Positions 1 to 18,100 of a stretch of DNA of 64,000 nt are shown one piece after another. Within the stretch, counting starts at the first letter, position 1. Each line of letters opens with the position of its first letter. The notes under the pieces are model-generated. The model was not told the DNA's origin, searched no databases, and saw nothing but the letters and a program-made list of their open reading frames with translations. The stretch comes from Caecitellus pseudoparvulus (taxonomy: Eukaryota; Protista; Bigyra: Bicosoecida). The translations under genes were made by a program, and so were the position numbers. The stretch lies in NCBI GenBank assembly GCA_965644315.1, contig CBFFRQ010000196.1, forward strand, positions 8,081 to 72,080, given 5' to 3'.

Positions 1-102
1 GCTGTGGCGTCCTACATGTGCAGAGGTGCATTGTGGGGCGCCCGTGTGACGCTCAAGCTGTACGGTGCCAAGCTGTGCCGAGGTGAAATGCATTGTGAGT
101 TG
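1..102 (+). mobile_element. 3' end of telomeric retroelement, family A (continues off the left edge)
   Basis: Carries the same terminal motifs as units B-D (GCTGTGG-initiated hairpin, CAAGCTGTA, AATGCATTG) and ends directly in CTAACC repeats; primary sequence is diverged from B, C and D. Confidence 0.8.
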
Positions 103-158
103 CTAACCTAACCTAACCCTAACCCTAACCCTAACCCTAACCCTAACCCTAACCTAAC
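103..158 (+). repeat. Telomeric repeat linker (CCCTAA)n, 56 bp: 6 perfect CCCTAA plus CCTAA variants
   Basis: ctaa-cctaa-cctaa-(ccctaa)6-cctaa-c; C-rich strand of TTAGGG. Confidence 0.97.
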
Positions 159-219
159 TTTCCAAATGTCAAGCTAATCACAAGTTGTGAAGTGCTAACA
201 TTGCCTAATCCAGGCGCTC

Positions 220-2466
220 GTGCACCCAAGTGTGGTGTTGCACAGTGCTTGCTGGTTGGGTGGTGCGCACCGGGGCGGGGTAGTGCGAATTCCGCACACC
301 ATCGCACCGTGGCTCCCAGTTTGCGCCCTCGGTCGGGGCATGCACCTGGGATCGACATCAAAAGCATCATTGACAAGCATCATGAACGCCCAAGTGGATC
401 AAGTCCTGGGGGTCCTCTTCGTGGAGGGGTGCCTGAAGCGCAAGCAAGTGCTCGGCCCCAGAACAGGTGTCTTCACTGACATGCCACGTCGGGGTGCCGC
501 ACGCACCTTCGAGCTTGGAGGACCCCTGCCCAAGACTGATCATGATAGTTCATCTTCGGCACGGGACATGTGGCTCGAGGTCTATGGGGAAGCCGCCGAA
601 CGGCTGATCCCAGGGCTGAGTGCGGAATTCGGCAACGCCAATGCGGCCCTGCGCCAGGGACCCACCGGATCGCCAACCATCCTCGTCACGCTCGGAAGTG
701 AGGGTGATTCACCAACAGTGGCACGTCAACTTCGCATTCTTGCTGCTCAAGAGGACGACTTCGCCATTCGAGTCGGCCAAGGTGGGTTCGTCGCCGTGGC
801 CTACACCAACACCAAGCAGTTCGCATCGGCGAAGGCGAAAGTGAAGGTGAAGGCCCACCCCACCGCCATCCAAGTGGCCCACCAAGTGACCAAGGAAGCA
901 ACCGAAATCGCCTGCCAGTCAGGTGATGTTGCCAAGGTCATGTGCCTCGTTAGGTCCCACTTCGACCATGGCCCCGTGCCAGCCCAAGCCGTCCGTCCCA
1001 GTGTCAGACAATCCGTCCCCTCCGAGGGTGATGCACCTGTCGACACCAAGACACCATCGACCTGGACTGACACTCAGCTCGACAAGGCACCGAAGAAGAA
1101 GAAGACCCGTCGAGGCAAGCGAGGAAAGGGCAAGTCAGCCGGACGATCCCTCACCTTCGAGGACGTCTTCATCAAGAACGTCCGGCCACCTGCACCTCGA
1201 CCAACCTCACCACCTGCCACCCAAGGCTCACCCAAAGATACCGTCACCACCCCTGTGGTGCATGCCATGTTGCCTTCATCAAGGGTGCAGCGGGGCGTCG
1301 ACCGCAAGTGGCCGTCCCCCACCCCGTCGGGCGAGGCAAGCCCCGAGGTGCACCGGTATCGGCCGTCTGCAGCAGCAGCATGGGAGGTGATCACAAGGGT
1401 GGTGCCTCTTCATGACAGTGTGCGGACACCCGAGCACCTGGCCGAGTACCCCATCAAGCCTGGCCCTCTGGCCGACCTGCTGTCATCGACCCACGTGTAC
1501 TCTAACGTGGGGGGGCGGGCCTGTGTCCAGGCCTGTCTCGAGACGGCAGCAGGGGAGAGGGTCTTCGAGGCTGGGGACCTCCTCCTACTCCAGCATGCAG
1601 CCACCATCAACGCTGCCCAGCTTGCCTTCAAGCACATGGTCAGGCAGCTGGAGGGGGTGGTCAGTGACTCGTCCAGCTCGGACATCATGGACGTCGGCCA
1701 GAAGCCACCCTCCCCCTTCCGCTCAGACGGGCAACGGGTGGCCGTCTTCCGCAACATGCTGCACCAGCACTCGCCGGATGACACCTTCCTGGCCCCAGGT
1801 ACACCACCAGTCCTGCTTCCCGGCCTGCACCTGCTCATCGACCGCATCAACCAAGGGTACCGTGCCCCAGCCGGGCATGATGACCTTGGCCAGGCCGGCG
1901 TCGACCCCAGCCAGGTTGATGAAGAGGGTGACCAAGAGGGGCACCTCGACGGAGTGCTGTATGCCTTCGCACTTCGAGAGGTGTGGACCGACAACACGGC
2001 CCATCTGCAGCTCATCCTCGTCGACCATGATCGAGGCAAGCTGGTGCTGTGGAACCCCGACATCCCTGACCTCCATGACGAGCTGCCCCTGCACAAGTGC
2101 ATGACCCGGCTGGCAGCCGAAGGCATCAACGTCTTGTACCGGATCTGGACCACACCCGAGGCGGGCAGTCCAGCACCCTTCCGGGACAGGCTTCGAGGGG
2201 CACTCCAGTCTCTCCGAGATGACTTCCCCCCCCTGCCTCACAAGGCCACCGACGGCACCGTGCACCCCCAGACCCTCATCGCTGGCAAGGGCACAAGGGT
2301 GGCCATGCCTCATGGGCGGATGACCCGACAGCAGGCCGCCACCCTGGAGGCTGAGGTCAAGGACCCCCTCAAGCGGCTGGTGCCTGAAGACGGCGAGGGT
2401 CGCCTGCCCAAGGTCAAGGATGTGCCCCACATCTCGATCGGGCAGATGGGTGGACGCCTGATGTAA
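220..2466 (+). CDS. ORF1/Gag-like protein of element B1 (748 codons from GTG; first in-frame ATGs at 340 and 382)
   Basis: Intronless ORF with basic KKKKTRRGKRGKGK tract and Pro-rich linker; no YxDD/RT motifs seen; Gag-like role inferred from context only. Confidence 0.7.
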   Translation: MHPSVVLHSACWLGGAHRGGVVRIPHTIAPWLPVCALGRGMHLGSTSKASLTSIMNAQVDQVLGVLFVEGCLKRKQVLGPRTGVFTDMPRRGAARTFELGGPLPKTDHDSSSSARDMWLEVYGEAAERLIPGLSAEFGNANAALRQGPTGSPTILVTLGSEGDSPTVARQLRILAAQEDDFAIRVGQGGFVAVAYTNTKQFASAKAKVKVKAHPTAIQVAHQVTKEATEIACQSGDVAKVMCLVRSHFDHGPVPAQAVRPSVRQSVPSEGDAPVDTKTPSTWTDTQLDKAPKKKKTRRGKRGKGKSAGRSLTFEDVFIKNVRPPAPRPTSPPATQGSPKDTVTTPVVHAMLPSSRVQRGVDRKWPSPTPSGEASPEVHRYRPSAAAAWEVITRVVPLHDSVRTPEHLAEYPIKPGPLADLLSSTHVYSNVGGRACVQACLETAAGERVFEAGDLLLLQHAATINAAQLAFKHMVRQLEGVVSDSSSSDIMDVGQKPPSPFRSDGQRVAVFRNMLHQHSPDDTFLAPGTPPVLLPGLHLLIDRINQGYRAPAGHDDLGQAGVDPSQVDEEGDQEGHLDGVLYAFALREVWTDNTAHLQLILVDHDRGKLVLWNPDIPDLHDELPLHKCMTRLAAEGINVLYRIWTTPEAGSPAPFRDRLRGALQSLRDDFPPLPHKATDGTVHPQTLIAGKGTRVAMPHGRMTRQQAATLEAEVKDPLKRLVPEDGEGRLPKVKDVPHISIGQMGGRLM

Positions 2467-2886
2467 GTCACCTGTGGGGGCATACTCCCTGTGCCACACA
2501 TGACTGAAGCTTTGTGTCGCGACCGACGCACATAGCTGACATCGGACATTGGAAAGTCCAACCCAACCTCACCATCACCAACCCAACATCGATACCAACA
2601 CATCAGGACTCGGCTCAGTGGAAGGGGAAGGCACTTGCAGCAAGATCTGTGAGGCCGCCCCCAAACCTGAGCCGAAGGGACAGCCGGGCTGGGTCGTGTG
2701 CTTGCATCTCAGCAACACCCAGTCCGTGTCGAGTCCATATCCTCCAGCCCACACCGCCACCCAAGCCAAGCAAGTCGGGTCTCCACCCCTGGACATCGGA
2801 CCGAGACGGACGAGACTGGACTGGACGGACAAGACAAGAGTGGACCGAGACCTGGACCTACACCTCAAGACCATCCCACCGGGGCG

Positions 2887-3081
2887 GGCGCTGAAGCGCC
2901 AAGACAGACGGCGACTTATACAACGGACACGAGTCTGTGCTAGTCGCAAAGCCGTGCAAGCGGTGCCGTCGTGGTGTCTGTGTCACTGCATTCTGTTGTG
3001 GCGCAGGTGGCACCACATGTCCAAGCCCAAGCTGTACCATGATGTAGCCTGCATGGAGGCAATCTGCAATGCATTGAGTAG
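2887..3081 (+). ncRNA. Conserved structured 3'-terminal RNA element (B1)
   Basis: Stems ggcgc/gcgcc, gacggc/gccgtc, gact/agtc, acggac/gtctgt, gccgt-GCAA-gcggt, gtggtgtc/ggcaccac, ccatg/catgg; these covary with copies in A, C and D. Confidence 0.75.
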
Positions 3082-3098
3082 CTAACCCTAACCCAAAA
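3082..3098 (+). repeat. Telomeric linker CTAACCCTAACCC plus AAAA between B1 and B2
   Basis: gagtag|ctaaccctaaccc-aaaa|actttcc. Confidence 0.9.
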
Positions 3099-3161
3099 AC
3101 TTTCCAAATGTCAAGCTAATCACAAGTTGTGAAGTGCTAACATTGCCTAATCCAGGCGCTC

Positions 3162-5408
3162 GTGCACCCAAGTGTGGTGTTGCACAGTGCTTGCTGGTTG
3201 GGTGGTGCGCACCGGGGCGGGGTAGTGCGAATTCCGCACACCATCGCACCGTGGCTCCCAGTTTGCGCCCTCGGTCGGGGCATGCACCTGGGATCGACAT
3301 CAAAAGCATCATTGACAAGCATCATGAACGCCCAAGTGGATCAAGTCCTGGGGGTCCTCTTCGTGGAGGGGTGCCTGAAGCGCAAGCAAGTGCTCGGCCC
3401 CAGAACAGGTGTCTTCACTGACATGCCACGTCGGGGTGCCGCACGCACCTTCGAGCTTGGAGGACCCCTGCCCAAGACTGATCATGATAGTTCATCTTCG
3501 GCACGGGACATGTGGCTCGAGGTCTATGGGGAAGCCGCCGAACGGCTGATCCCAGGGCTGAGTGCGGAATTCGGCAACGCCAATGCGGCCCTGCGCCAGG
3601 GACCCACCGGATCGCCAACCATCCTCGTCACGCTCGGAAGTGAGGGTGATTCACCAACAGTGGCACGTCAACTTCGCATTCTTGCTGCTCAAGAGGACGA
3701 CTTCGCCATTCGAGTCGGCCAAGGTGGGTTCGTCGCCGTGGCCTACACCAACACCAAGCAGTTCGCATCGGCGAAGGCGAAAGTGAAGGTGAAGGCCCAC
3801 CCCACCGCCATCCAAGTGGCCCACCAAGTGACCAAGGAAGCAACCGAAATCGCCTGCCAGTCAGGTGATGTTGCCAAGGTCATGTGCCTCGTTAGGTCCC
3901 ACTTCGACCATGGCCCCGTGCCAGCCCAAGCCGTCCGTCCCAGTGTCAGACAATCCGTCCCCTCCGAGGGTGATGCACCTGTCGACACCAAGACACCATC
4001 GACCTGGACTGACACTCAGCTCGACAAGGCACCGAAGAAGAAGAAGACCCGTCGAGGCAAGCGAGGAAAGGGCAAGTCAGCCGGACGATCCCTCACCTTC
4101 GAGGACGTCTTCATCAAGAACGTCCGGCCACCTGCACCTCGACCAACCTCACCACCTGCCACCCAAGGCTCACCCAAAGATACCGTCACCACCCCTGTGG
4201 TGCATGCCATGTTGCCTTCATCAAGGGTGCAGCGGGGCGTCGACCGCAAGTGGCCGTCCCCCACCCCGTCGGGCGAGGCAAGCCCCGAGGTGCACCGGTA
4301 TCGGCCGTCTGCAGCAGCAGCATGGGAGGTGATCACAAGGGTGGTGCCTCTTCATGACAGTGTGCGGACACCCGAGCACCTGGCCGAGTACCCCATCAAG
4401 CCTGGCCCTCTGGCCGACCTGCTGTCATCGACCCACGTGTACTCTAACGTGGGGGGGCGGGCCTGTGTCCAGGCCTGTCTCGAGACGGCAGCAGGGGAGA
4501 GGGTCTTCGAGGCTGGGGACCTCCTCCTACTCCAGCATGCAGCCACCATCAACGCTGCCCAGCTTGCCTTCAAGCACATGGTCAGGCAGCTGGAGGGGGT
4601 GGTCAGTGACTCGTCCAGCTCGGACATCATGGACGTCGGCCAGAAGCCACCCTCCCCCTTCCGCTCAGACGGGCAACGGGTGGCCGTCTTCCGCAACATG
4701 CTGCACCAGCACTCGCCGGATGACACCTTCCTGGCCCCAGGTACACCACCAGTCCTGCTTCCCGGCCTGCACCTGCTCATCGACCGCATCAACCAAGGGT
4801 ACCGTGCCCCAGCCGGGCATGATGACCTTGGCCAGGCCGGCGTCGACCCCAGCCAGGTTGATGAAGAGGGTGACCAAGAGGGGCACCTCGACGGAGTGCT
4901 GTATGCCTTCGCACTTCGAGAGGTGTGGACCGACAACACGGCCCATCTGCAGCTCATCCTCGTCGACCATGATCGAGGCAAGCTGGTGCTGTGGAACCCC
5001 GACATCCCTGACCTCCATGACGAGCTGCCCCTGCACAAGTGCATGACCCGGCTGGCAGCCGAAGGCATCAACGTCTTGTACCGGATCTGGACCACACCCG
5101 AGGCGGGCAGTCCAGCACCCTTCCGGGACAGGCTTCGAGGGGCACTCCAGTCTCTCCGAGATGACTTCCCCCCCCTGCCTCACAAGGCCACCGACGGCAC
5201 CGTGCACCCCCAGACCCTCATCGCTGGCAAGGGCACAAGGGTGGCCATGCCTCATGGGCGGATGACCCGACAGCAGGCCGCCACCCTGGAGGCTGAGGTC
5301 AAGGACCCCCTCAAGCGGCTGGTGCCTGAAGACGGCGAGGGTCGCCTGCCCAAGGTCAAGGATGTGCCCCACATCTCGATCGGGCAGATGGGTGGACGCC
5401 TGATGTAA
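3162..5408 (+). CDS. ORF1/Gag-like protein of element B2
   Basis: Translation identical to 220..2466. Confidence 0.7.
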   Translation: MHPSVVLHSACWLGGAHRGGVVRIPHTIAPWLPVCALGRGMHLGSTSKASLTSIMNAQVDQVLGVLFVEGCLKRKQVLGPRTGVFTDMPRRGAARTFELGGPLPKTDHDSSSSARDMWLEVYGEAAERLIPGLSAEFGNANAALRQGPTGSPTILVTLGSEGDSPTVARQLRILAAQEDDFAIRVGQGGFVAVAYTNTKQFASAKAKVKVKAHPTAIQVAHQVTKEATEIACQSGDVAKVMCLVRSHFDHGPVPAQAVRPSVRQSVPSEGDAPVDTKTPSTWTDTQLDKAPKKKKTRRGKRGKGKSAGRSLTFEDVFIKNVRPPAPRPTSPPATQGSPKDTVTTPVVHAMLPSSRVQRGVDRKWPSPTPSGEASPEVHRYRPSAAAAWEVITRVVPLHDSVRTPEHLAEYPIKPGPLADLLSSTHVYSNVGGRACVQACLETAAGERVFEAGDLLLLQHAATINAAQLAFKHMVRQLEGVVSDSSSSDIMDVGQKPPSPFRSDGQRVAVFRNMLHQHSPDDTFLAPGTPPVLLPGLHLLIDRINQGYRAPAGHDDLGQAGVDPSQVDEEGDQEGHLDGVLYAFALREVWTDNTAHLQLILVDHDRGKLVLWNPDIPDLHDELPLHKCMTRLAAEGINVLYRIWTTPEAGSPAPFRDRLRGALQSLRDDFPPLPHKATDGTVHPQTLIAGKGTRVAMPHGRMTRQQAATLEAEVKDPLKRLVPEDGEGRLPKVKDVPHISIGQMGGRLM

Positions 5409-5828
5409 GTCACCTGTGGGGGCATACTCCCTGTGCCACACATGACTGAAGCTTTGTGTCGCGACCGACGCACATAGCTGACATCGGACATTGGAAAGTC
5501 CAACCCAACCTCACCATCACCAACCCAACATCGATACCAACACATCAGGACTCGGCTCAGTGGAAGGGGAAGGCACTTGCAGCAAGATCTGTGAGGCCGC
5601 CCCCAAACCTGAGCCGAAGGGACAGCCGGGCTGGGTCGTGTGCTTGCATCTCAGCAACACCCAGTCCGTGTCGAGTCCATATCCTCCAGCCCACACCGCC
5701 ACCCAAGCCAAGCAAGTCGGGTCTCCACCCCTGGACATCGGACCGAGACGGACGAGACTGGACTGGACGGACAAGACAAGAGTGGACCGAGACCTGGACC
5801 TACACCTCAAGACCATCCCACCGGGGCG

Positions 5829-6023
5829 GGCGCTGAAGCGCCAAGACAGACGGCGACTTATACAACGGACACGAGTCTGTGCTAGTCGCAAAGCCGTGCA
5901 AGCGGTGCCGTCGTGGTGTCTGTGTCACTGCATTCTGTTGTGGCGCAGGTGGCACCACATGTCCAAGCCCAAGCTGTACCATGATGTAGCCTGCATGGAG
6001 GCAATCTGCAATGCATTGAGTAG
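5829..6023 (+). ncRNA. Conserved structured 3'-terminal RNA element (B2)
   Basis: Same sequence as 2887..3081. Confidence 0.75.
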
Positions 6024-6035
6024 CTAACCCTAACC
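6024..6035 (+). repeat. Telomeric linker CTAACCCTAACC
   Basis: Between the B2 3' end and the truncated 5' end of C. Confidence 0.9.
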
Positions 6036-7994
6036 GCCACGGAGCGGCGGAAGCTCATCTGGCGATCCCGCTGGTTGAGGTCAGGGCAGTCCATGAAGGT
6101 CAAGGGGACACCCATCCAACGCACGAGCACCTACTCGTACTTGGGTGTCCCCCTGTCTGAAACTATCAGCCGAACCCGACTGCTTGCCACGAGGCAGGCC
6201 ACTCTGTCCTGCACTCGGGCTGGGTTCGGCTGCGGTGCCCTCCTCAGTAGTGCCTGGCTGAGTCCGATCCTGAAGCAGCGGATCGGCACTGCCTCCATCA
6301 ACAGTGCCGCCGACTACATCTTGGCGTCCCAGGTCAGCAACTCGGTGCTGCCTTTGCGGGACGTCGATCGTGGACTCGCCATCGCCTTCAGCAAGGCCCA
6401 GCTGGGGATGCAAAGCTCGCTGGCACGCATGCACAACTATGCGAAGCTTGCTGTGTGCGGCGTCTTGCCAACACACATCCGGGCGACAAAACTCCGCAGC
6501 AACATCTTCATGAAGCTGCTGAAGAATGTCCAAGTGCCCACCCCCGTGGCCAAGGCGCTGTCCATCAGCCTGCGCCAAGCCCTGGACCTGCTCCCCTCCC
6601 CCCTGGACATGGCCGGCATCTTCCTGGCCAATGTCCGCCTCGACAGGCCAGGCGCCGGAGGCATCCCAGATCCATGGGCCTTACACGGTCTACTCGACCT
6701 CTGGCTCCTTGGATGCCTCCCTGACCGCGCACGCCTGGAGGCTGTGTGCCTGGAGCCGCCGCCTGACTCGGCCCCAGACGCACACGGGGTCGACATCACC
6801 GCTGGGATGGACCCCGCCCCCCCCAAGATCCAGCTGCTTGGACTCGCGGCGGCGGAGTCCTCGGATCTGTCCGCGGCCCCCCAGTTCCCGGACACCACCC
6901 CCTGGGCCACTCGGCAACGCGTCGTCGCCTCCTTCCTTCATGTGGCCCAGACGGTCAAGTGCAGTGCAGTTGGCTACACTCCCACGGGGGAGATGAAGGC
7001 CACCAGGCGTCCGAAGGAGTACCACATCGGTGTGGGCGCTCGCTTCTTCGCCTGGCTGCACCCGATCCCTTCCTCTGTGAACCCAGTCTTCTGGGTCCAC
7101 GAAGGCGATCAGGAGAGACGTGTGAAGGTGCACTTGTGGCAGACGCTTCAAGTGTTCAACGGGGATGACACCCCGACACTGTTCAGCGCCTGCCCCCTGT
7201 GCCACAGCGTCTCATGGTGCAGCCTGCAGGAGCACGTTCTCTTGGACTGCCCCCACCACGCCCTGGTCCCTGCGAGAAGGTCCGCCCTGTCCGAGGTGCG
7301 GACCTTCCTGTCCAGATCCAATGATGCAGTGAGGGGGGTCATCAACTGCCAGTACCTTGAAGTACCCCCCTCACTGCTGGATGCCGTCGTCCACGCCGAC
7401 GAAGGCCGCTTGTTGGGCCGCCCGTGTCGCCTGCTGCTGCTGCGACTGCTGCTGTGCGGCCAGTGGCCCCATCGGTGGGGCCAGCCCCCGGCACAGCAGC
7501 CTTGGAGTCCCGAGGCAGCCGCGGTCCTGAGTAACCCTCATGTCACTCTCCGCGGCTCCTCGGGTCCACTCCGCCCCCCCAAGTACTGGCGCGAGGCCCT
7601 GGTAGCCGCCACGGGCCTCGCGGTATCTGCGTGGGACGCGGTGGTGACGTGCATGCTCAGCCCTACCTCTCGTGCTGACCGTCACATCCAGAGGCACGCC
7701 CGGTACCTCTGGTGGGCGGCGCATGGACGAACGTGTCCTCTTCCAGGTTACTCGGCTCCTGATCCGAGTACTGTGAGGAAGCATGTGCGGGACGTGAAGA
7801 CGCGGCGCTTCGAGCGCACTTACTTTCCTGTCAAGTCCCCTCGTCGGCCGCCTCGCTCCTTCACGAGGCAGGCCACCTTGCTCGACTTCAGGCTGGCACG
7901 GCCGGAAGTCCACGAGGAACCTCCGGCACCGTCGATGTCATCCTCGGCGTCGTCCTCTGGGTCGTCCTTGAAGTGTCCATCTGACTCTGAGTAG
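6036..7994 (+). CDS. C-terminal part of non-LTR ORF2 (end of RT/thumb plus CCHC zinc finger), 5'-truncated
   Basis: GTPIQRTSTYSYLGVPL matches the YxYLG motif at the end of LINE RT domains; CPLC...EHVLLDCPH matches the LINE C-terminal CCHC finger; frame is open back to the telomeric junction; catalytic YxDD absent (would lie upstream of the truncation). Confidence 0.8.
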   Translation, partial: ATERRKLIWRSRWLRSGQSMKVKGTPIQRTSTYSYLGVPLSETISRTRLLATRQATLSCTRAGFGCGALLSSAWLSPILKQRIGTASINSAADYILASQVSNSVLPLRDVDRGLAIAFSKAQLGMQSSLARMHNYAKLAVCGVLPTHIRATKLRSNIFMKLLKNVQVPTPVAKALSISLRQALDLLPSPLDMAGIFLANVRLDRPGAGGIPDPWALHGLLDLWLLGCLPDRARLEAVCLEPPPDSAPDAHGVDITAGMDPAPPKIQLLGLAAAESSDLSAAPQFPDTTPWATRQRVVASFLHVAQTVKCSAVGYTPTGEMKATRRPKEYHIGVGARFFAWLHPIPSSVNPVFWVHEGDQERRVKVHLWQTLQVFNGDDTPTLFSACPLCHSVSWCSLQEHVLLDCPHHALVPARRSALSEVRTFLSRSNDAVRGVINCQYLEVPPSLLDAVVHADEGRLLGRPCRLLLLRLLLCGQWPHRWGQPPAQQPWSPEAAAVLSNPHVTLRGSSGPLRPPKYWREALVAATGLAVSAWDAVVTCMLSPTSRADRHIQRHARYLWWAAHGRTCPLPGYSAPDPSTVRKHVRDVKTRRFERTYFPVKSPRRPPRSFTRQATLLDFRLARPEVHEEPPAPSMSSSASSSGSSLKCPSDSE

Positions 7995-8636
7995 CGGGCG
8001 ATGTGTGCAGGACGCGGCGCGAGGCGGTGCAAGCTTACGGCGTGGCGTGGTGACAACCACGGTCGTGCCTGAGCGAAGTGCGAGAGCAGGGTGATGTGAT
8101 GTTCTTGATCGATGATGAAACCTGTGGAAAGTTGGAGAATGTGGTGAAGAATATGCCCAGTATACTCACATGTTGGCTCGGGGTCCACGTGCAGCTCGAG
8201 ATAGATTCCTGTGACGGAGCGCGCGGAATTTGGCAGGGTGAACACGCGGGCGCGCGGGGAAGCGTTGCAGGCGGGGCGCACCGGTCCTCTGGGCCTTGAT
8301 TGATGAAGTGACTGGATAATCTGTGAAGAAAGGGAGGTGTTCTTGGTGTTCTTGGTACGCGGGGGGGCGTTGTTCCGACGGTGCGCGCTGTACCACCGGC
8401 GTGGTGCAGTGCAACACCGTCGTGAAACGCCACCCGAAGGCGGCCACCGAGGCTCAGGACAGCGCGCAGTGGCCCCAGGCACACGTTCAGTGCCTGGCAA
8501 GGGCCAGGAGAAGCGGGGGGTTTCTGAATTATGAAACGAAGTGTGGACTTGGACGAAGCAGGAGTGGACCCGGCCCCCTCTGGCTCAGCCGACTGAGCCG
8601 AGAGGGCGCGGGAGGGACAGTTCAGCACGTATGGGC

Positions 8637-8834
8637 GGGCGCGGGCGCGCCCTAGCAAGCGGCGGCTTATACAACGGACGTATGTCCGTGATGGCTGCAG
8701 ACCCACGAGAGTGGGAGCCGCTGTGGTGCCTACTACAGTGCATTCGTGTGCTGTGGTACGCAAGGCACCACGAGTGATGCCCAAGCTGTACCGTGCAAGA
8801 GTGTGCGGAGGCAAGTTGCAATGCATTGAGTGAG
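8637..8834 (+). ncRNA. Conserved structured 3'-terminal RNA element (C)
   Basis: gggcgc/gcgccc, agcggc/gccgct, acggac/gtccgt, cccac-GAGA-gtggg, gtggtgcct/aggcaccac, tactacagtgca-TTCG-tgtgctgtggta, ccgtgca/tgtgcgg. Confidence 0.78.
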
Positions 8835-8841
8835 CTAACCC
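8835..8841 (+). repeat. Single telomeric linker CTAACCC
   Basis: gagtgag|ctaaccc. Confidence 0.75.
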
Positions 8842-9099
8842 CCCAAGAGACCGAGCTCTGGCCCCCTTGCGGGCATGTGGACCTTCTTTCGAAGGGGCGG
8901 GCGTTGAAACGCCCTAGCGAAGCGGCGGCTTATACAACGGACTCACGTCTGTGCTGGCTGCAGATCCATTTACATGGTAGCCGCTGTGGTGTACACCGGA
9001 GCGCACTCGTGTGCGACGGTGAGCAGGACACCACGTGTGATGCCCCAGCTGCACCGCGCCTGTGGCAAGCGTGGAAGCGAATTGCAATGCATTGACTGT
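8842..9099 (+). mobile_element. 3' stub (258 bp) of telomeric retroelement, family D
   Basis: Contains GCGGCGGCTTATACAACGGAC...CAATGCATTG and ends in telomeric repeats; innermost unit of the array. Confidence 0.8.
8899..9099 (+). ncRNA. Conserved structured 3'-terminal RNA element (D)
   Basis: gggcgt-TGAA-acgccc, agcggc/gccgct, acggac/gtctgt, ccat/atgg, gtggtgt/acaccac, caccg-ga-gcgca-CTCG-tgtgc-ga-cggtg, ccgcgc/gcgtgg. Confidence 0.75.
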
Positions 9100-9117
9100 C
9101 TAACCCCTAACCCCTAA
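9100..9117 (+). repeat. Innermost variant telomeric repeats (CTAA-CCCCTAA-CCCCTAA) at the chromosome-healing junction
   Basis: Abuts a gene copy truncated relative to its paralog at ~13662. Confidence 0.85.
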
Positions 9118-9960
9118 ACAGCGGGTCCCGCGCACTGCCTCCATCGTTGTGGGCGGTGTGTGTGGAGGGCGGGCTGTCACACTGCACGGCCTTGCCGCCC
9201 ACCACCTCCACGCCACCCACGAGCAGGGTGGACTTGCCGACCAAGCGAGCAGTGCGCTGGGCGAGGTGGGGCGGGATGGTGTTGCGGGAGCTGGGCGGCG
9301 TCGTGGCGTGCAGCCCCACCGCCGTGAACAGCAGCACCGGCGCCAGAGCCGTGCCCTGCTCCCTGCTCAGTGCCCCGTCTGCCAGTTGCAAACAGGCTGC
9401 CCGGGCCAGGGCGAACAGGCGCTCATCCCCAGCCAGCCACGCCGCCACGCCAGGCGGTGGGGGGCAGCTCCCCACACTCGCCACTGCCACGGTGTTCAGG
9501 ACGGCGCCCAACCACCTGACTGCCGGCTCCCGTACCTGCCACTCTCGCCGTCGCGGTTGAACACAACGATGCTGTCTCCAGCCGCCCCCGCTACACGTTT
9601 GCCCTGCGAAAGTCGCCGTGGAAGGTGCAAATATGGTTGCCACGTCGGCTGCGCCGGCACGCACGTCCTCTGACACTGCCACGTGCGTGATGAAGGTGCT
9701 GCCCGAGAGGAAGGCAGTGCCTTTCGCCAGCTCCACTTCGTTAGTGCCAGTGTTCTCCACGTGCACCATGGTCTGGGGAGCAAGGCAGCGGCGGTTGCGG
9801 AATTTGCACGCCACTCGCAGCCGTCGAATGCCCGCCTGCGCACCAGAGCATTCTCAACGCCAGTCTTGGAGCTGTCACCGCCTGAAACAGCCAGAGTACC
9901 ACCTGCGAGGGGCACCAGTTGGAAGACGGGTGCCCCCATGGAGGCGCTGGACAGCGCCAT
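9107..9960 (-). pseudogene. 3'-truncated copy of the SEC12-N/UTP20-C chimeric gene (intron 9773..9843), cut by the telomere
   Basis: Paralogous to 13166..14508 up to DPLF, after which telomeric sequence supplies RG-stop. Confidence 0.7.
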
Positions 9961-10572
9961 GCCTTTGTTGTGGCTTGTGAGAGAGCAATCGCCACCACGC
10001 CAATGAATATCGTGTGGGCAAGGAAGGGTGACGGAGCCACACTGCCAGACACGACAAGGCCGCAACCCTTACACACAAAAGTGCGGGCACAGCAAAGCGG
10101 GCGGTTTTGCCCCGTCCACTGCAGTGTATGGACAGCGCTGCTCGGAGCGCACCAGTCCACCCCCTCCATCGCACTCCGCGCCTTGGCGCAGCTCCCGTCA
10201 GCACTCGAACGGGGATCTTTCGGATGTCCAGATAGCTAGTTCCGCACCTTTCGTGCTGGGATGATGCGCACCGCATCGAGCGGAGCGGGACACCCTTCAT
10301 ATGTCTTGCACCAAATTGCTCCTCATCCATTTCCCACTCTTACTTGTGGGTTCATTGGGCATCCGGACATCAGCGTGCATTGTGCCTTGTCTCCGCTCCT
10401 GGCCGCCACAGGTGAGCGTGCTCTGGTGCAAGTGCGGAAGTTGCTCCCTCGTACACGTCAGATGCGACAACGCCTCCCCGCCACACCAATGCACCTGCCT
10501 ACTGCCTACACCCCACAGGAGCTTGCTGCATAGCACTGCCACACTTGGCAAGACCCCCTACCATCCATCGCC

Positions 10573-12918
10573 ATGGTGCGTGGGTGTAGGCACGGCGCCT
10601 CGCTTTCGCCAGCACTTGCGACAAAGCGTGTCGCACACACTGCACGGCACACAGCGCCCTGCCCCTCCCCGACGCCTCAGGCAGCAGCAACAGGACAGGT
10701 CACGGAGGGCAGTGCAGCAGCTACTCCAGGCGTCGATGACACACACGCTGAGGCGGTGGCGGCATGCTTGCGCAAGATGCAGTGCTTGCCGGGCAGCGTC
10801 ATGGACCACGGCCCAGCACTGCGAGGACTGGCAGCCATTGGGCGTGGCGAAGCGCCTGTTGCAGGTGATGACGCCCCATCGGCCATGAGCCTGGTGGAGC
10901 TGGAGGCTGCACTGCGTGATGCGGGGAGTGCGCTGTTGGAGCAGGCTGGGCTGTTGGCGGGGCAGCGTGAGCGAGGTGGTGTGTGTGCTGCGCTGCAGTA
11001 CCTGTCGTTCCGGTGCTTCTGCGCGGTGGATGTGCTTCATCAAGCGGCATCTGGTGTGGGTGTTGATGCGGTGCCGGGGGGCGAAGCACTGTGGGGCGCC
11101 ATTGTGGGTGCTTGGGGCAGTGTACGGGCCGGTGTGAACGTAGAGGGTGCGCTGGCTGACCTGACGCGATGGTGGCAAGGCTTCATAGTGGAGGATTCGA
11201 TTGTGGCTCGTGGGGTTGGCTCCGTCACACATGATGCCGGTGGCGAGGCAGCGATGGATGCGGCTCTGGCTGGCATGCGTCAGCAGGCTGGTTGGCTGCG
11301 AGGCGAAGCGGCAGGCGAGTTGACGAGTGAGAGTGCTGCGGAGCACTTGGAGTGTGCTGCGAGTGCGGTGGAAGAGTTGCGTGGGCTGTTGGGGTGTGCG
11401 CCGGTGATGAGTGGTCGGAGGGTGAAGGCTGTGGATGGCTTGGACTTGTCGGGCGGCTTGGGGTGCATGAACGGCAAGGGTGTGAGTGTGTACAGTGGGA
11501 GGGTTGAGATCGTGGATGAGGATGTGGGTGGAGCTGGGGATGTGGAGCAGTGGGCAGCAAGTGTGGAGGGGGGTGCGAGGGCGCTTGCCACGAGTGTTGG
11601 CGCTGTGAAGCGTGTTCAAGCGGCTCGCATCGCCCATGGCCTGCCGCGGATGGCGCAGACTCCACGCAAAGTCGCTATGGCACACATTTGTGGAGCTGGC
11701 AGGGCTGATGAGCCGGTTGGCGAGAGGAGCAGTGTCACAGTGCAAGTGCAGTGTGAGGCGGGTTGGCCGCTGAGGGTGTTCCTGGAGGATGAAGCGTGGG
11801 GCGATGTTGGGCTGGATGTGAAGCAGCGTGTGGCTGTGAAGGTGCTGGGTGTGTGTGCTGTGGCGGAGGCGTGCGGAGTGAGTCTGAGTGGTGTGGGTGT
11901 GGGGAGCTTTGTGGTGGTGGGTGTGGGGAGTGGCAGTGTGGGTGACCTTGTGGCCGCACTGGATGGGGGTGAGTGTGAGGTGGTATTGAGTGCGTGTGGC
12001 GGTGTGTGGGGCTTAGATCGCACTGAAGGCGGCAACCGTGATGTGAAGGGTGTGTTAAGTGTGCTGCGTGAGGTGCTTGGTGTGGGAGGTGGGGCCTTGG
12101 GTGGCGGATCGGGCGTTGGGTCGAGCTTCGTCGGCAGCGGTGAAGGTGGCGAACATGTATTGTCGAGCGCGTTGGAGGTGTTGGAGCGGGGAGGGAGTGG
12201 TTGCTGCATGGGTGCATACGCGGTGGCATGTGAAGGAAGTGGGGGTGGAGTGGGGCGTTTGTCAGGTGTGGAAAGTGCGGTGCGGGGTGTGCTTGATGGT
12301 GAGCAGGCAGCTGCTGCGGCAGGTCAGGCTGAGGCAGCTCAAGCTGAGGCTGTACCGGCTACAGAGTCGGAGGTTGCTGCCGAGCAAGTGAAGTTAAGCG
12401 AGGAGAACACCACAGCGTTTGTGGAAGCGTGCAAGGATGGGGAGCTTGCGAGAGTGCGCGAGTTGCTTTCATTGACGGGGGATGAGGCAGTGGATGTACA
12501 TGCGGAAGGAAATGTTGAGATCTGGCCAAGGGTTTGCAGACAGGGCCCTGAGGCTGGCTTCCGATGGGCCTGCGCCAGGGGCCGCACAGACATCGTGCGT
12601 GAGCTGCTGGACCTGACTGGGGCGCGGGCAGTGGATGTGCATGCGGCGGATGTGTTTGGACCCGAGGCCGCCTTCCGAGGCGCATGCGAGAATGGCCACA
12701 CAGACGTTGTGCGTGAGCTGCTGGCCCTCACTGGGGCGCGGGCAGTGGATGTGCACGCGGCCGCTTGGGATGGACCTGAGGCTGGCTTCCGATGGGCATG
12801 CCGCAATGGCCGCACAGACATCGTGCGTGAGCTGCTGGGTCTCACTGGGCATCGCAGGATCCCAGACAGCGTGCGACAGGAAGCCACCAAGTTTGAGAGC
12901 TTGAAGGAGTTGATTTGA
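10573..12918 (+). CDS. Ankyrin-repeat protein (N-cap plus 3 repeats of 38 aa) with Gly/Val-rich N-terminal region
   Basis: GPEAxFRxACxxGxTDxVRELLxLTGARAVDVHA repeats. Confidence 0.8.
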   Translation: MVRGCRHGASLSPALATKRVAHTARHTAPCPSPTPQAAATGQVTEGSAAATPGVDDTHAEAVAACLRKMQCLPGSVMDHGPALRGLAAIGRGEAPVAGDDAPSAMSLVELEAALRDAGSALLEQAGLLAGQRERGGVCAALQYLSFRCFCAVDVLHQAASGVGVDAVPGGEALWGAIVGAWGSVRAGVNVEGALADLTRWWQGFIVEDSIVARGVGSVTHDAGGEAAMDAALAGMRQQAGWLRGEAAGELTSESAAEHLECAASAVEELRGLLGCAPVMSGRRVKAVDGLDLSGGLGCMNGKGVSVYSGRVEIVDEDVGGAGDVEQWAASVEGGARALATSVGAVKRVQAARIAHGLPRMAQTPRKVAMAHICGAGRADEPVGERSSVTVQVQCEAGWPLRVFLEDEAWGDVGLDVKQRVAVKVLGVCAVAEACGVSLSGVGVGSFVVVGVGSGSVGDLVAALDGGECEVVLSACGGVWGLDRTEGGNRDVKGVLSVLREVLGVGGGALGGGSGVGSSFVGSGEGGEHVLSSALEVLERGGSGCCMGAYAVACEGSGGGVGRLSGVESAVRGVLDGEQAAAAAGQAEAAQAEAVPATESEVAAEQVKLSEENTTAFVEACKDGELARVRELLSLTGDEAVDVHAEGNVEIWPRVCRQGPEAGFRWACARGRTDIVRELLDLTGARAVDVHAADVFGPEAAFRGACENGHTDVVRELLALTGARAVDVHAAAWDGPEAGFRWACRNGRTDIVRELLGLTGHRRIPDSVRQEATKFESLKELI

Positions 12919-13165: not shown

Positions 13166-14508
13166 CTACCGCCTCCGCAGCACCTTCAGCTTGTCCATGC
13201 GCTTCGCCACGTGGTGCTTCTTCGCCTGCGCCTTCTGGCTCCGACACTCTGCAGCTGCTGGCGGGTTCACCACCGCCTCCTGCGCCACCTGCTTCGCCCG
13301 CCGCTCCTTCGCTGCCGCCCTGGCCCGCCGCTCGCTGTTGTAGGCTGTCAAGAACACATTTGCACCCATGGCACCCTGCACACCCTCCAAGACCTCGGAT
13401 GCAAAGGCGCCTGCCTCTGCTGCAGCGGCCGCCTGTTGTGCCTGCTCTGACCAGGATGGCGCGTCGGCCAGGCGGGGGTCGCTGGCCACGTGCTCTGCCG
13501 CCTGCACAATGCGGAACACTACCCGCGCCACCGGCACCACGTAGCGCTGCAGGTCCGCCTGCGGCAAGTGCCCAGCCATGCCCCCGAACACGTTCAGCGC
13601 CGTGGTGGCCGCCGGCCCGCCCTGCTGCACTGCCGTGTTGCTGAGGCGCTGCAGCAGCCAGAACAGCGGATCACGTGCACTACTGCCGTCGTCATCTTGG
13701 GCGGTGTGTGTGGAGGGCGGGCTGTCACGCTGCACCGCCTTGCCGCCCACCACCTCCACGCCACCCACGAGCAGGGTGGACTTGCCGGCCAAGCGAGCCG
13801 TGCGCTGGGCGAGGTGGGGCGGGATGGTGTTGCGGGAGCTGGGCGGCGTCGTGGCGTACAGCCCCACCACCGTGAACAGCAGCACCGGCGCCAAAGCCGT
13901 GCCCTGCTCCCTGCTCAGTGCCCCGTCCGCCAGCTGCACACAGGCTGCCCGGGCCAGGGCGAACAGGCGCTCATCCCCAGCCAGCCACGCCGCCACGCCA
14001 GGCAGTGGGGGGCAGCTCCCCACACTCGCCACTGCCACGGTGTTCAGGGCGGCGCCCAGCCACCTGGCTGCCGGCTCCCGTACCTGCCGCTCTCGCCGTC
14101 GCGGTTGAACACGACGATGCTGTCTCCAGCCGCGCCTGCCACGCGCTTGCCCTGCGAAAGTCGCCGTGGAAGGTGCAAATATGGTTGCCACGTCGGCTGC
14201 GCCGGCACTCACGTCCTCCGACACTGCCACGTGCGTGATGAAGGTGCTGCCCGAAAGGAACGCAGTGCCTTTCGCCAGCTCCACTTTGTTGGTGCCAGTG
14301 TTCTCCACGTGCACCATGGTCTGTGGAGCACAGCAGCGGCGGTTGCGGAATTTGCACGCCTCTCGCAGCCGTCGAATGCCCGCCTGCGCACCAGAGCATT
14401 CTCAATGCCAGTCTTGGAGCTGTCACCGCCTGAAACAGCCAGAGTACCACCTGCGAGGGGCACCAGTTGGAAGACGGGTGCCCCCATGGAGGCGCTGGAC
14501 AGCGCCAT
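13166..14508 (-). CDS. Chimeric gene: SEC12/PREB-like N-terminus fused to a UTP20-like C-terminal fragment (intron 14321..14391)
   Basis: PVFQLVPLAGGTLAVSGGDSSKTGIENAL resembles the Sec12 K-loop blade; ASEVLEGVQGAMGANVFLTAYNSERR...AVVNPPAAA...KRMDKLK resembles the UTP20 C-terminus; far too short for either full protein. Confidence 0.55.
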
Positions 14509-15118
14509 GCCTTTGTTGTGGCTTGGGACAGAGCAGTCGCCACCACGCCAATGAATATCGAGTGGGCAAGGAAGGGTGACGGAGCCACACTGCCAGACAC
14601 GACAAGGCCGCAACCCTTACACGCAAAAGTGCGGGCACAGCAGAGCGGGCGGTTTTGCCCCGTCCAGTGCCGTGTATGGACAGCGCTGCTCGGAGCGCAC
14701 CAGTCCACTCCCTCCATCGCACTCCGCGCCTTGGCGCAGCTCCCGTCAGCACTCGAACGGGGATCTTTCGGATGTCCAGATAGCTTGTTCCGCACCCTTC
14801 CTGCTGAGATGATGGGCACCGCATCGAGCGGAGCGGGGCACACCTGACATGCCTGCTACCAAAATGCACCTCAATTATATCCCAAACACCTGTGATGTCA
14901 CGGGACATTTGCACATCAGCGTGCCTGGCGTCTTGTCTTTAGTCTAGGCCGCCACAGGTGAGCGTGCACTGGTGCAAGTGCGGAAGTTGCTCCCTCGTAC
15001 ACGTCAGCTGCGACAGCGCCTTCCCACGGCACCAACACACGCGTCCACTGCCATCACCCCGCAGGAGTCGGCTTTACAGCACAGCTACGCCTGACTAGAC
15101 CCCCTGCCATCCATCGCC

Positions 15119-18100
15119 ATGGTGCGTGGGTGTGGGCATGGTGCCTCGCTTTCGCCAGCACTTGCGACAAAGCGTGTCGCACACACACCACAGCACACAG
15201 CGCCCTGCCCCTCCCCGACGCCACAGGCAGCAGCAATAGGACAAGCCACGGAGGGCAGTGGAGCAGCTACTCCAGGCATCGACGACGCACAGGCTGAGGT
15301 TGTGGCGGCATGCTTGCGCAAGGTGAAATGCTTGCCGGGCAGCGTCATGGACCACGGCCCAGCACTGCGAGGACTGGCAGCCATTGGGCGTGGCGAAGCG
15401 CCTGTCGCAGGTGATGCCCCATCGGCCATGAGCCTGGTGGAGCTGGAGGCTGCACTGCGCGATGCGGGGAGTGCGCTGTTGGAGCAGGCTGGGCTGTTGG
15501 CGGGGCAGCGTGAGCGAGGTGGTGTGTGTGCTGCGCTGCAGTACCTGTCGTTCCGGTGCTTCTGCGCGGTGGATGTGCTTCATCAAGCGGCATCTGGTGT
15601 GGGTGTTGATGCGGTGCCGGGGGGCGAAGCACTGTGGGGCGCCATTGTGGGTGCTTGGGGCAGTGTACGGGCCGGTGTGAACGTAGAGGGTGCGCTGGCT
15701 GACCTGACGCGATGGTGGCAAGGCTTTGAGGGGGGGGAGGTGGATGTAGCTGGTGAGGATGGCCCCGTCACACATGATGCTGGTGGTGAGGCAGCGGCGG
15801 ATGCGGCTTTGGCCGGCATGCGTCAGCAAGCTGAGTGGCTGCGAGGCGAGGCGGCAGGGGAGCTGAGGAGTGAGAGTGCTGCGGAGCACTTGGAGAGTGC
15901 TGCGAGTGCAGTGGAGGAGCTACGTGGGCTGTTGGGGTGTGCGCCGGTGATGAGTGGTCGGAAGGTGAAGGCTGTGGATGGCTTGGACTTGCCGGGCGGC
16001 TTGGAGTGTCTGAACGGCAAGGGTGTGAGCGTGTACAGTGGACGGGTTGAGATCGTGGATGAGGATGTGGGTGGAGCTGTGGATGTGGAGCAGTGGGCAG
16101 GGAGTGTGGAGGCGGGTGCGGCAGCGCTTGTCACGAGTGTTGGCGCCGTGAAGCGTGGCGAAGCGACTCGCATCGCCCGTGGACTGCCGCGGATGGCGCA
16201 GACACCACGCAAAGCAGCACTGGCACATATCTGTGGAGCGGGCAGGGCTGATGAGCCACTCGGCCAGAGGAGCATGGTGACGGTGCAGGTGCAGTGTGAG
16301 GCGGGGTGGCCGCTGGGGTTGTTCCTGGAGGATGAAGCTTGGGGCGATGTTGGGCTGGAGGTGAAGCAGCGCGTGGCTGTGAGGGTGTTGGGTGTGTGTG
16401 CTGTGGCGGAGGCGTGTGGAGTGAGTCTGAGTGGTGTGGGTGTGGGGAGCTTTGTGGTGGTGGGTGTGGGGAGTGGCAGTGTGGGGGATCTGGTGGGCGC
16501 ACTGGATGGGGGTGGGTGTGAGGTGGTGTTGAGTGCATGTGGCGGTGTGTGGGGCACAGGTCGCTCTGATGGTGGCAGCAGTGAGGGTGGTGGTGTGTTG
16601 AGTGTGCTGCGTGGGGTGCTTGGTGTGGCAGGTGGTGCGTTGGGTGGCGGATCGGGCGTTGGGTCAAGCTTGGTGGGGAGCGGTGAAGGTGGCGAACATT
16701 CACTGTCGGGTGCGTTGGAGGTGTTGACGCGAGAACGGAATGGTTGCTGCATGGGTGCATATGCGATGGCGTGTGAGGGAAGTGGGGGTGGACTGGGTCA
16801 TCTGGAAGGTGTGGAAAGTGCTGTGCGGGGTTTGCTTGATGAGGAGCAGGCAGGTGGTGCGGCGGGTCAGGCGGAGACAGCTGACGCAGAGGCTGTACCG
16901 GCTACAGAGTTGGAGATTGCTGCCGAGCAAGTGAAGTTCAGCGAGGAGAACACCACAGCGTTTGTGGAAGCGTGCAAGGAGGGCAAACTTGCCAGGGCGC
17001 GTGAGCTGCTGTCTTTGACGGGGGATGAGGCAGTGGACGTGCACGCGGCGGGATTTGTTCAGGTGGGGCCATTTCGCAGAAGTGATGGTCCTGAGGCTGC
17101 ATTCCGGTGGGCATGCTTCAATGGCCACACAGACATCGTGCGTGAGCTGCTGGGCCTGACTGGGGCGCGGGAGGTGGATGTGCATGCGGTGGATTGGTTT
17201 GGACCTGAGCCAGCCTTCCGAGTGGCATGCACCGAGGGCCACACCGACATCGTGCGTGAGCTTCTGGCTCTGACTGGTGCGCGGGAAGTGGATGTACACG
17301 CGGCAGATGAGGATGGACCTGAGGCCGCCTTCCGATGGGCATGCCGTGAAGGCCATTCAGACATCGTGTGTGTGCTGCTGGGCCTGACTGGGGCAAGGGA
17401 AGTGGATGTGCACGCAGCGGATGAGGATGGACCTGAGGCTGCCTTCCGATGGGCATGCCGTGAAGGTCATTCAGACATTGTGTGTGAGCTGTTGGGCCTG
17501 ACTGGAGTCAGGGCAGTGGATGTTCACGCAGGGGATGGTTATGGTCTTGAGGCTGCCTTCCGAAACGCATGTTTTTGGGGCCACATAGATATCGTGCGTG
17601 AGCTGCTGACGCTCACTGATGCAAGGGAAGTGGATGTGCATGCGGCGGATGATGATGGACCCGAGGCCGGCTTTCGAGAGGCATGCCATGCTGGCCACCC
17701 AGACATTATGCGTGAGCTACTTGCCCTCACCGGCGCGCGGGCAGTGGATGTGCACGCGGCGGATGGGGATGGACCAGAGGCCGCCTTCCGAGCAGCATGC
17801 GGAAGTGGCCGCGCAGACGTTGTGCGTGAGCTGCTGGCCCTGACCGGGGCGCGGGCAGTGGATGTGCACGCGGCGGATGGGGATGGACCAGAGGCCGCCT
17901 TCCGAGCAGCATGCGGAAGTGGCCGCGCAGACGTTGTGCGTGAGCTGCTGGCCCTGACCGGGGCGCGGGCAGTGGATGTGCATGCGGCGGATGGGGGTGG
18001 ACCTGAAGCAGCCTTCCGAAACGCATGCCGGGGTGGCCACATTGATGTCGTGCGTGAGCTGCTGGGCCTGACTGGGGCGCGGGAAGTGAATGTACACGCG

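Follow-up and report, generated by a model that had tools for sequence, protein, structure and literature searches.

The chromosome end examined here belongs to the protist Caecitellus pseudoparvulus and is occupied by a stack of retrotransposons of the long interspersed nuclear element (LINE) type. The window, which is the whole 64,000-nucleotide stretch that was analysed, corresponds to positions 8081-72080 of contig CBFFRQ010000196.1 (C196:8081-72080) and begins within this stack. Its first 9,117 positions hold five units (A, B1, B2, C and D) from four families, separated by short telomere-type linkers. The identity of these units as a telomere-dedicated LINE system, with a protein-coding partner that lacks reverse transcriptase (RT), is very probable. 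The earlier note on this DNA took the start of the window for the chromosome end. A genome search shows that 8,080 bp more of the contig precede window position 1, but the end itself is real and carries the four-family array: C196 opens at contig position 1 with 573 bp of uninterrupted CCCTAA, and the start of the contig is therefore a real assembled chromosome end. In total, the terminal ~17 kb of the chromosome is a retrotransposon stack under the CCCTAA tract, a cap attributed to telomerase. Reading of positions 1-10,500 together with repeat analysis placed the five units and their linkers where they had first been described. The features of this region, including the open reading frames (ORFs), are as follows.

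1-102, plus strand: 3' end of unit A; the whole element (C196:574-8182, 7.6 kb) is full length and lies directly below the 573-bp terminal tract
103-158, plus strand: linker after A, 56 bp of CTAACC/CTAACCC units (Tandem Repeats Finder, 9.8 copies)
159-3081, plus strand: B1, full-length RT-less element of 2,923 bp, with an ORF at 382-2466 (694 amino acids, aa)
158-250, plus strand: shared 5' module, B1 copy (B2 counterpart at 3100-3192)
2888-3087, plus strand: shared 3' RNA module, B1 copy, ~190 nt plus an unpaired CUAACC tail
5830-6029, 8641-8840 and 8906-9105, and C196:7989-8188 in unit A: equivalent 3' modules
3082-3100, plus strand: linker between B1 and B2, CTAACCCTAACCCAAAAAC, with an A-run outside telomerase templating
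3101-6023, plus strand: B2, identical to B1, with an ORF at 3324-5408
6024-6035, plus strand: linker between B2 and C, CTAACCCTAACC, 12 bp
6036-8834, plus strand: C, 5'-truncated, comprising the final 2.8 kb of an autonomous family 7.76 kb long; ORF remnant at 6036-7994 with a C-x2-C...H-x4-C finger
8835-8841, plus strand: linker between C and D, CTAACCC, 7-9 bp, with a boundary that is ambiguous in a C run
8842-9099, plus strand: D, a 258-bp 3' fragment of the fourth family, with tail variant ACTGT
9100-9117, plus strand: innermost linker, CTAACCCCTAACCCCTAA(A), which abuts the point where a gene copy is broken
9118-9814, minus strand: truncated gene copy under the array, missing ~160 C-terminal codons relative to the paralogue at 13166-14317 (minus strand)

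All five units have a single orientation, in which the coding strand is the C-rich strand of the telomere and the 3' ends point inward. Long poly(A) is absent from every one of them; instead, each unit ends with AATGCATTG-N4-8, followed by CTAACC. The linkers measure 56, 19, 12, 7-9 and 18-19 bp in array order, and B1 and B2 are 100% identical with a spacing of 2,942. The lack of poly(A), the telomere-type linkers and the common polarity, all of which had been claimed from the window, are thus seen in all five units. The same holds for the 5' truncation of C and D: D is a 3' fragment, and C corresponds to positions 4963-7760 of L053 (C30:8200-16100), a full-length copy of 7.76 kb of the kind that the earlier note had proposed to recover. 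The units also show the hallmarks of LINEs: there are no terminal repeats within them, 5' truncation is frequent, and a CTAACC(C)n tail replaces poly(A).

The autonomous families (A, C, a family 76% identical to C, and the D type) encode one polyprotein each, comprised of an N-terminal protein, an apurinic/apyrimidinic endonuclease (APE), an RT and a CCHC finger. In unit A, a single ORF of 2,188 aa (C196:795-7361) contains a Pfam Exo_endo_phos match at aa 804-962, which scores 24.7 bits against a cut-off of 24.5, an RVT_1 match at aa 1303-1582 (E 2.9e-29), and the finger (C-x2-C...H-x4-C) at the C-terminus. The best matches of the RT in the PDB are R2Bm (2e-16) and human L1 ORF2p (1e-11), while a weak match to ExoIII is the sole one for the APE part. 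Whether the endonuclease was of the APE or the restriction-like type had been raised as a point to check. It is of the APE type, and the catalytic motifs WNV-G, TEPG, YVPNW, GDLN-HPGD, RALDHIL and LSDH are all present in A and in the full-length C copy. Identity between A and C is 67% in the RT, 59% in the APE and 38-47% in the other regions. Since the APE is second only to the RT in this respect, the endonuclease appears to be under strong constraint.

The ORF remnant in C is 44% identical to aa 1546-2167 of A and retains the finger, in agreement with its first description as the C-terminus of a LINE RT followed by a CCHC finger. Genome-wide, the 3' part of C is found in 14 copies at ~95% identity and in 7 copies at 76%, and the D family likewise has longer relatives elsewhere in the genome. 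In C-family copies on contigs C41, C99 and C105, and in the 76%-identical family, the frame is open over the 1,150 codons examined. A frame break just upstream of the RT is common to several other C-family copies, including L053; it could be an inactivating mutation that has spread among copies or an error of the assembly consensus.

The most abundant and most uniform element is B, which is present in at least 47 full-length copies at ~100% identity and often occupies the outermost position, 0.8-2 kb in from the contig start. Its 694-aa ORF aligns collinearly with aa 1-703 of A (41% identity) and ends at the point where A enters the APE domain. B had been credited with an ORF1-like gene only. 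It is indeed a coding element without RT, but the comparison with ORF1 has to be refined, given that the autonomous elements have a single ORF and that B corresponds to their first ~703 codons. No autonomous parent with an N-terminus matching that of B was found in the genome, and an exact look-up of the B protein in public assemblies found it not to be on record.

Pfam searches with B, the N-termini and the C fragment returned no families, and neither a gag nor a knuckle domain was detected in the N-terminus. An AlphaFold2 model of B aa 340-694, built from four sequences, reached a pLDDT of 63 and a pTM of 0.66; the model of the first 230 aa (pLDDT 37) was unusable. Foldseek gave no significant match to the former model. 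In an exhaustive structural search with the same model, the best 49 rows were all papain-like cysteine peptidases, and the top match, Josephin-2, aligned over 134 residues with a root-mean-square deviation of 3.5 and a Z-score of 8.2, which is the background level of the tool for a best match. Cys381, at the start of a helix, and His541, in a beta-strand, are invariant in the four sequences, one of them from a distant coral-metagenome relative. Thus, aa ~375-603 of B may adopt a papain-like (clan CA) cysteine-peptidase fold, and this prediction is offered as a lead only.

The families have two modules in common, one at each end. Among A, B and C, the first ~90 nt are near-invariant, with three CTAA(T/C)C telomere half-sites in them; this near-invariance is seen although the family proteins are just 41-45% identical. 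The 5' module is too invariant for covariation analysis, and an Rfam scan of it revealed no hepatitis delta virus (HDV)-like or other known ribozyme or RNA. An alignment of the last ~190 nt from ten tail variants yields a common predicted structure, which is followed by an unpaired ...TTG-N4-8-CUAACC tail. Compensatory changes occur in 19 of the 49 predicted pairs. In this structure, 97% of cells are paired compared to 23-51% in slid controls, and none of 500 shuffles reached the observed values, figures to be read with the caveat that prediction on the same alignment as was used for the test favours the structure. Through the 3' module, a single RT would have an obvious means of copying several families and, in trans, B.

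The system is confined to chromosome ends. The 3' motif, AATGCATTG-N4-8-CTAACC, occurs 152 times in the genome (119 forward and 33 reverse) and not once in a reversed-pattern control, far in excess of chance. Positions relative to contig ends were checked for the 100 listed sites of the 152; of these, 98 have telomere polarity and are no more than 30 kb from a contig end. C18:155165 is the one listed forward site that is more than 30 kb from a contig start, and among the listed reverse sites a single divergent match, on C38, is not within 29 kb of a contig end. Arrays were found on more than 60 contig ends. The mapping of the motif had been proposed as a way to distinguish a telomeric system from copies scattered internally in random orientation; the latter is not the pattern. 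Together with the collinearity of B and A, the mapping of ends confirms the comparison drawn in the earlier note to Drosophila HeT-A/TART, in polarity as well as in the pairing of an RT-less with an RT-bearing element.

The site at C18:155165, 155 kb from the contig end, is an internal relic whose polarity matches that of the nearer telomere. Its parts are the 3' end of an element bearing the AACTTC tail variant, a telomere-repeat stretch of 11 bp, and a degenerate 3' fragment that resembles B. It may be a former chromosome end that was displaced inward, or else an interstitial insertion. In the arrays, the AACTTC variant is usually the innermost unit. At position ~4216 of locus L005, on C99, the sequence after the element tail CTAACCTAAA runs on as GGGTTAGGG, a telomere repeat in the opposite orientation.

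A search for telomerase, also suggested earlier, gave a Telomerase_RBD match (E 7e-21) in an open frame of 1,389 codons, and both the RBD and the RT lie within the 1,135 aa that were scanned. Judging from this reading frame, the TERT gene is apparently intact.

Statistics on the junctions were drawn from 40 distinct cases, taken from 32 loci plus pattern listings. Following an element 3' end, the telomere-type tract is 12.5 bp long at the median and does not exceed 66 bp in 38 of the 40; in four, bare CTAACC is the whole tract, and in two it is long (307 and 423 bp). Terminal tracts, by comparison, are 0.6-2 kb. Gaps between tandem B copies measure 5, 5, 5, 5, 5, 17, 19, 27, 57, 348 and 546 bp, and where the 3' end of B is joined by a short junction to a full-length 5' end, 8 of 13 junctions read GAGTAG-CTAAC-TTTCC. 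The register of the 3' junction is constant at CTAACC, while on the 5' side of the linker it is variable, with a microhomology of 0-4 nt. Junctions of the innermost units to non-element DNA are mostly 6-26 bp.

In 11 of the 40, the linker ends in an A-run that is off the repeat (CCCAAAAA, CCTAAAA or CCCAA). As telomerase cannot write such sequence, these runs were not made by telomerase; they look like short oligo(A) added after a telomere-like RNA tail. Truncation points are also skewed, with 10 of 16 falling in the last 700 nt, which is typical of abortive reverse transcription and not of erosion.

Some junctions are peculiar. The sequence GAGTAG-CTAACCCTAACCCAAAAAC-TTTCC is found on two contig ends (C196:11151-11194 and C190:3119-3162); it follows a full-length B on one and a 25-nt B tag on the other. 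Terminal tracts also enclose B 3' tags 16-31 nt long (C140:2154-2182, C187:1960-1991, C187:2786-2814 and C125:3155-3188). Three short B tags begin at the same base (GGCAATC...), and such tags may reflect stops where the base of the 3' structure lies.

At the base of the array in the window, the subtelomere contains a tandem 4.5-kb duplication, in which 9117-12849 matches 13662-17392 at 89.8% identity over 3.7 kb. The minus-strand ORF of the paralogue (13166-14317) extends 160 codons beyond the copy under the array. Because the homology starts at 9117 and 13662 while the paralogue continues, the array is joined via 19 bp to a break inside a gene, and from its sequence the array base would be classed as a healing-type junction. 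Each copy of the duplication also carries an ankyrin-repeat gene with a 114-nt period, with ~4 repeats in one (ORF 10573-12918) and ~14 in the other (ORF 15119-18565); the larger gene matches Pfam Ank_2 (E 2e-45).

How might such arrays arise? In the scheme that we favour, the RT would recognise the 3' module and could thus also copy B in trans. The telomere-like tail of the RNA, sometimes with a few additional A residues, would be placed against the G-rich strand's 3' end, which would then prime reverse transcription, so that the element is added outward with its 3' end toward the centromere. Most additions would take place on ends that have nearly lost their telomerase tract, broken ends included. 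Alternatively, the RT could switch templates, passing from one RNA's end to the tail of the following RNA. Telomerase would re-cap the new end afterwards. Priming on nearly bare ends is favoured because the junction tracts are short, A-runs are found in the linkers, and the array base is of the healing type. We put the probability of the whole statement, a telomere-dedicated APE-type system without long terminal repeats (non-LTR) and with an end-priming mechanism, at roughly 0.5.

Several points weigh against this scheme, and most of them would suit an insertion mechanism like that of the silkworm elements TRAS and SART, in which the APE nicks the G-rich strand at a fixed position in double-stranded repeats, the element is inserted by target-primed reverse transcription, and the arrays are a by-product with no role in end maintenance. 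The APE retains every catalytic motif and is second only to the RT in conservation, and such constraint argues for a need of the endonuclease, and for nicking having some part in the process, which pure end-priming does not require. The constant CTAACC register at the 3' junction fits a sequence-specific nick just as well. Tracts of 307, 348, 423 and 546 bp, and the B tags in long tracts, imply that events occur on long telomeres too; some elements or tags are flanked by long tracts on both sides. Moreover, silkworm SART1 also joins a specific endonuclease to 3' untranslated region (UTR) recognition and telomere-repeat pairing (PMC7265360). On the other hand, random insertion in tracts of 0.6-2 kb would leave linkers of hundreds of bp, in contrast to the median of 12.5 bp, and at many junctions the CTAACC of the element itself is the only repeat. 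Nor would it account for innermost junctions of mostly 6-26 bp, that of the window being on a broken gene, or for A-runs within linkers, and the variable 5' register implies that there is no fixed second-strand cut. On balance, insertion of this type is rather unlikely. The claim made in the earlier note, that priming on the G-strand alternates with telomerase, is therefore favoured by the short tracts, the A-runs and the junction in the broken gene but stays unproven, and the conserved APE keeps the insertion model in play.

Recombination between ends is another way to spread an array. If break-induced replication or gene conversion were the main process, the elements would be largely passengers with little retrotransposition of their own. 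At least 47 B copies are ~100% identical across many ends, and the window subtelomere contains the 4.5-kb tandem duplication. C196 and C190 also have the unusual junction with CCCAAAAAC in identical form, so some spread by recombination is implied, which also counts against end-priming as a complete account. As the main process it is quite improbable: the linkers of B differ from end to end (5, 11, 12, 16, 17, 18, 23, 40, 66 and 423 bp), as do the flanking families, the 3'-skewed truncations and the tags of 24-31 nt are signatures of reverse transcription, and several autonomous copies have kept long open frames. A further reservation about end-priming is that the structure of the array was read from the genome assembly alone. 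Identical B copies are difficult to assemble, and repeat-rich telomeric reads might have been chained wrongly. Such an artefact is highly unlikely, since more than 60 contig ends show the same architecture, in consistent polarity and with varied, specific junctions, contig starts have long clean telomere tracts, and a metagenome contig from elsewhere is 96.7% identical to a piece of one family.

If end-priming is correct, a broader role can be envisaged, albeit tentatively and with some doubt. The LINE superfamily may constitute a second system of end maintenance in a telomerase-positive, stramenopile-type protist, in which elements are added by preference to critically short or broken ends and heal them before telomerase re-caps them. 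The C-strand tail of the RNA would pair with, or be primed by, the 3' end of the G-strand. B would supply just the N-terminal protein with the putative peptidase fold, which might direct the ribonucleoprotein to chromosome ends and thus be an independent functional counterpart of the HeT-A Gag.

The elements are previously undescribed LINEs within the known class of telomere-specialised non-LTR retrotransposons. They combine features that are otherwise separate, namely an APE-type LINE, a telomere-repeat tail, a HeT-A-like coding partner without RT and an active-looking telomerase, and the system is found on essentially every assembled chromosome end. This provides a small-genome setting in which to ask whether retroelements and telomerase share the maintenance of ends. 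It also raises the questions of what an endonuclease does in elements that apparently add to free ends, and whether the non-autonomous B parasitises several autonomous families or cooperates with them via the shared RNA modules.

Few relatives are on record. An exhaustive protein search returned five close relatives followed by a steep drop to generic LINE RTs, and a separate homologue search gave two weak matches. The nearest RTs outside the family are unnamed or generic, one of them being annotated as 'LINE-1 ORF2' in Chlorella vulgaris (28% identity). Among the relatives, P0004 is a protein of 2,150 aa with the same architecture, encoded on a 7.9-kb coral metagenome contig without telomere repeats. 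The contig that encodes P0005 (18.8 kb) has CCCTAA repeats at its start and carries the element 7.5 kb further in, in C-strand sense. The elements on these two contigs have 34-35% polyprotein identity and the same APE-RT order. The contig of one relative fragment has 96.7% DNA identity to the 76%-identical relative of C. A literature search found no publication on these elements. A 2023 survey of telomere-targeting retrotransposons covers insects, Giardia, Chlorella, Pyricularia, anole and rotifers but no stramenopile (PMC10088271), and the FoTeRs of Fusarium oxysporum, which have 3' telomere tracts of few repeats, were added in 2025 (PMC12857005).

Among known systems, TRAS1 and SART1 of Bombyx mori (R1 clade) are similar in being LINEs with APE and RT that are confined to telomere repeats in a telomerase-bearing host, with a fixed 3' register, a 3' UTR structure that is presumably read by the RT, and many families side by side (PMC7265360, PMC10088271). 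In contrast to these, the elements described here have a single ORF of 2,188 aa in place of a gag-like ORF1 with zinc knuckles plus ORF2, and a telomere C-strand tail without poly(A). The families all run in the same direction, most junction tracts measure 20 bp or less, there is an RT-less protein-coding partner, and the host is a protist with TTAGGG repeats. TRAS1 and SART1 insert at a fixed site within telomere repeats, with repeats on both sides; here, the 3' register is fixed, the 5' register is variable, and the proximal tract is often just the CTAACC of the element.

HeT-A, TART and TAHRE of Drosophila share with this system the head-to-tail arrays with 3' ends toward the centromere, the restriction to chromosome ends, and an abundant RT-less element that encodes a non-enzymatic protein beside RT-bearing relatives. 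They are also added to receding or broken ends, with which the junction at window position 9117 may be compared. Drosophila has neither telomerase nor short repeats, in contrast to the TERT and the 573-bp CCCTAA cap found here; its elements have oligo(A) tails and not telomere-like ones. The Drosophila Gag has zinc knuckles, whereas the B protein is the N-terminus of a polyprotein, with a predicted domain of papain-like fold.

MoTeR1 and MoTeR2 of Pyricularia oryzae and the FoTeRs have a restriction-like endonuclease and belong to a CRE-related clade. The endonuclease of the present elements is instead of the APE type, and their non-autonomous partner differs in encoding a large conserved protein that is homologous to the N-terminus of the autonomous elements. 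Common to both are telomere-embedded non-LTR elements in telomerase-positive hosts, 3' tracts of few repeats, a non-autonomous partner that shares termini, and telomere-like 5' motifs (PMC12857005; PMC10088271).

The endonuclease-deficient Penelope-like elements Athena and Coprina resemble the present elements in their short 3' stretches of telomere repeat, their polarity and the proposed priming by the G-overhang (PMC8557442). Unlike these, which have a Penelope-type RT and no endonuclease, the system described here has a LINE-type RT and a conserved APE. Lastly, GilM and GilT of Giardia and Zepp of Chlorella are LINE-like elements arranged head to tail at chromosome ends (PMC10088271). By their descriptions, they are set apart from the elements of C. 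pseudoparvulus by another repeat unit, tail and set of domains, and no RT-less coding partner has been reported for them.

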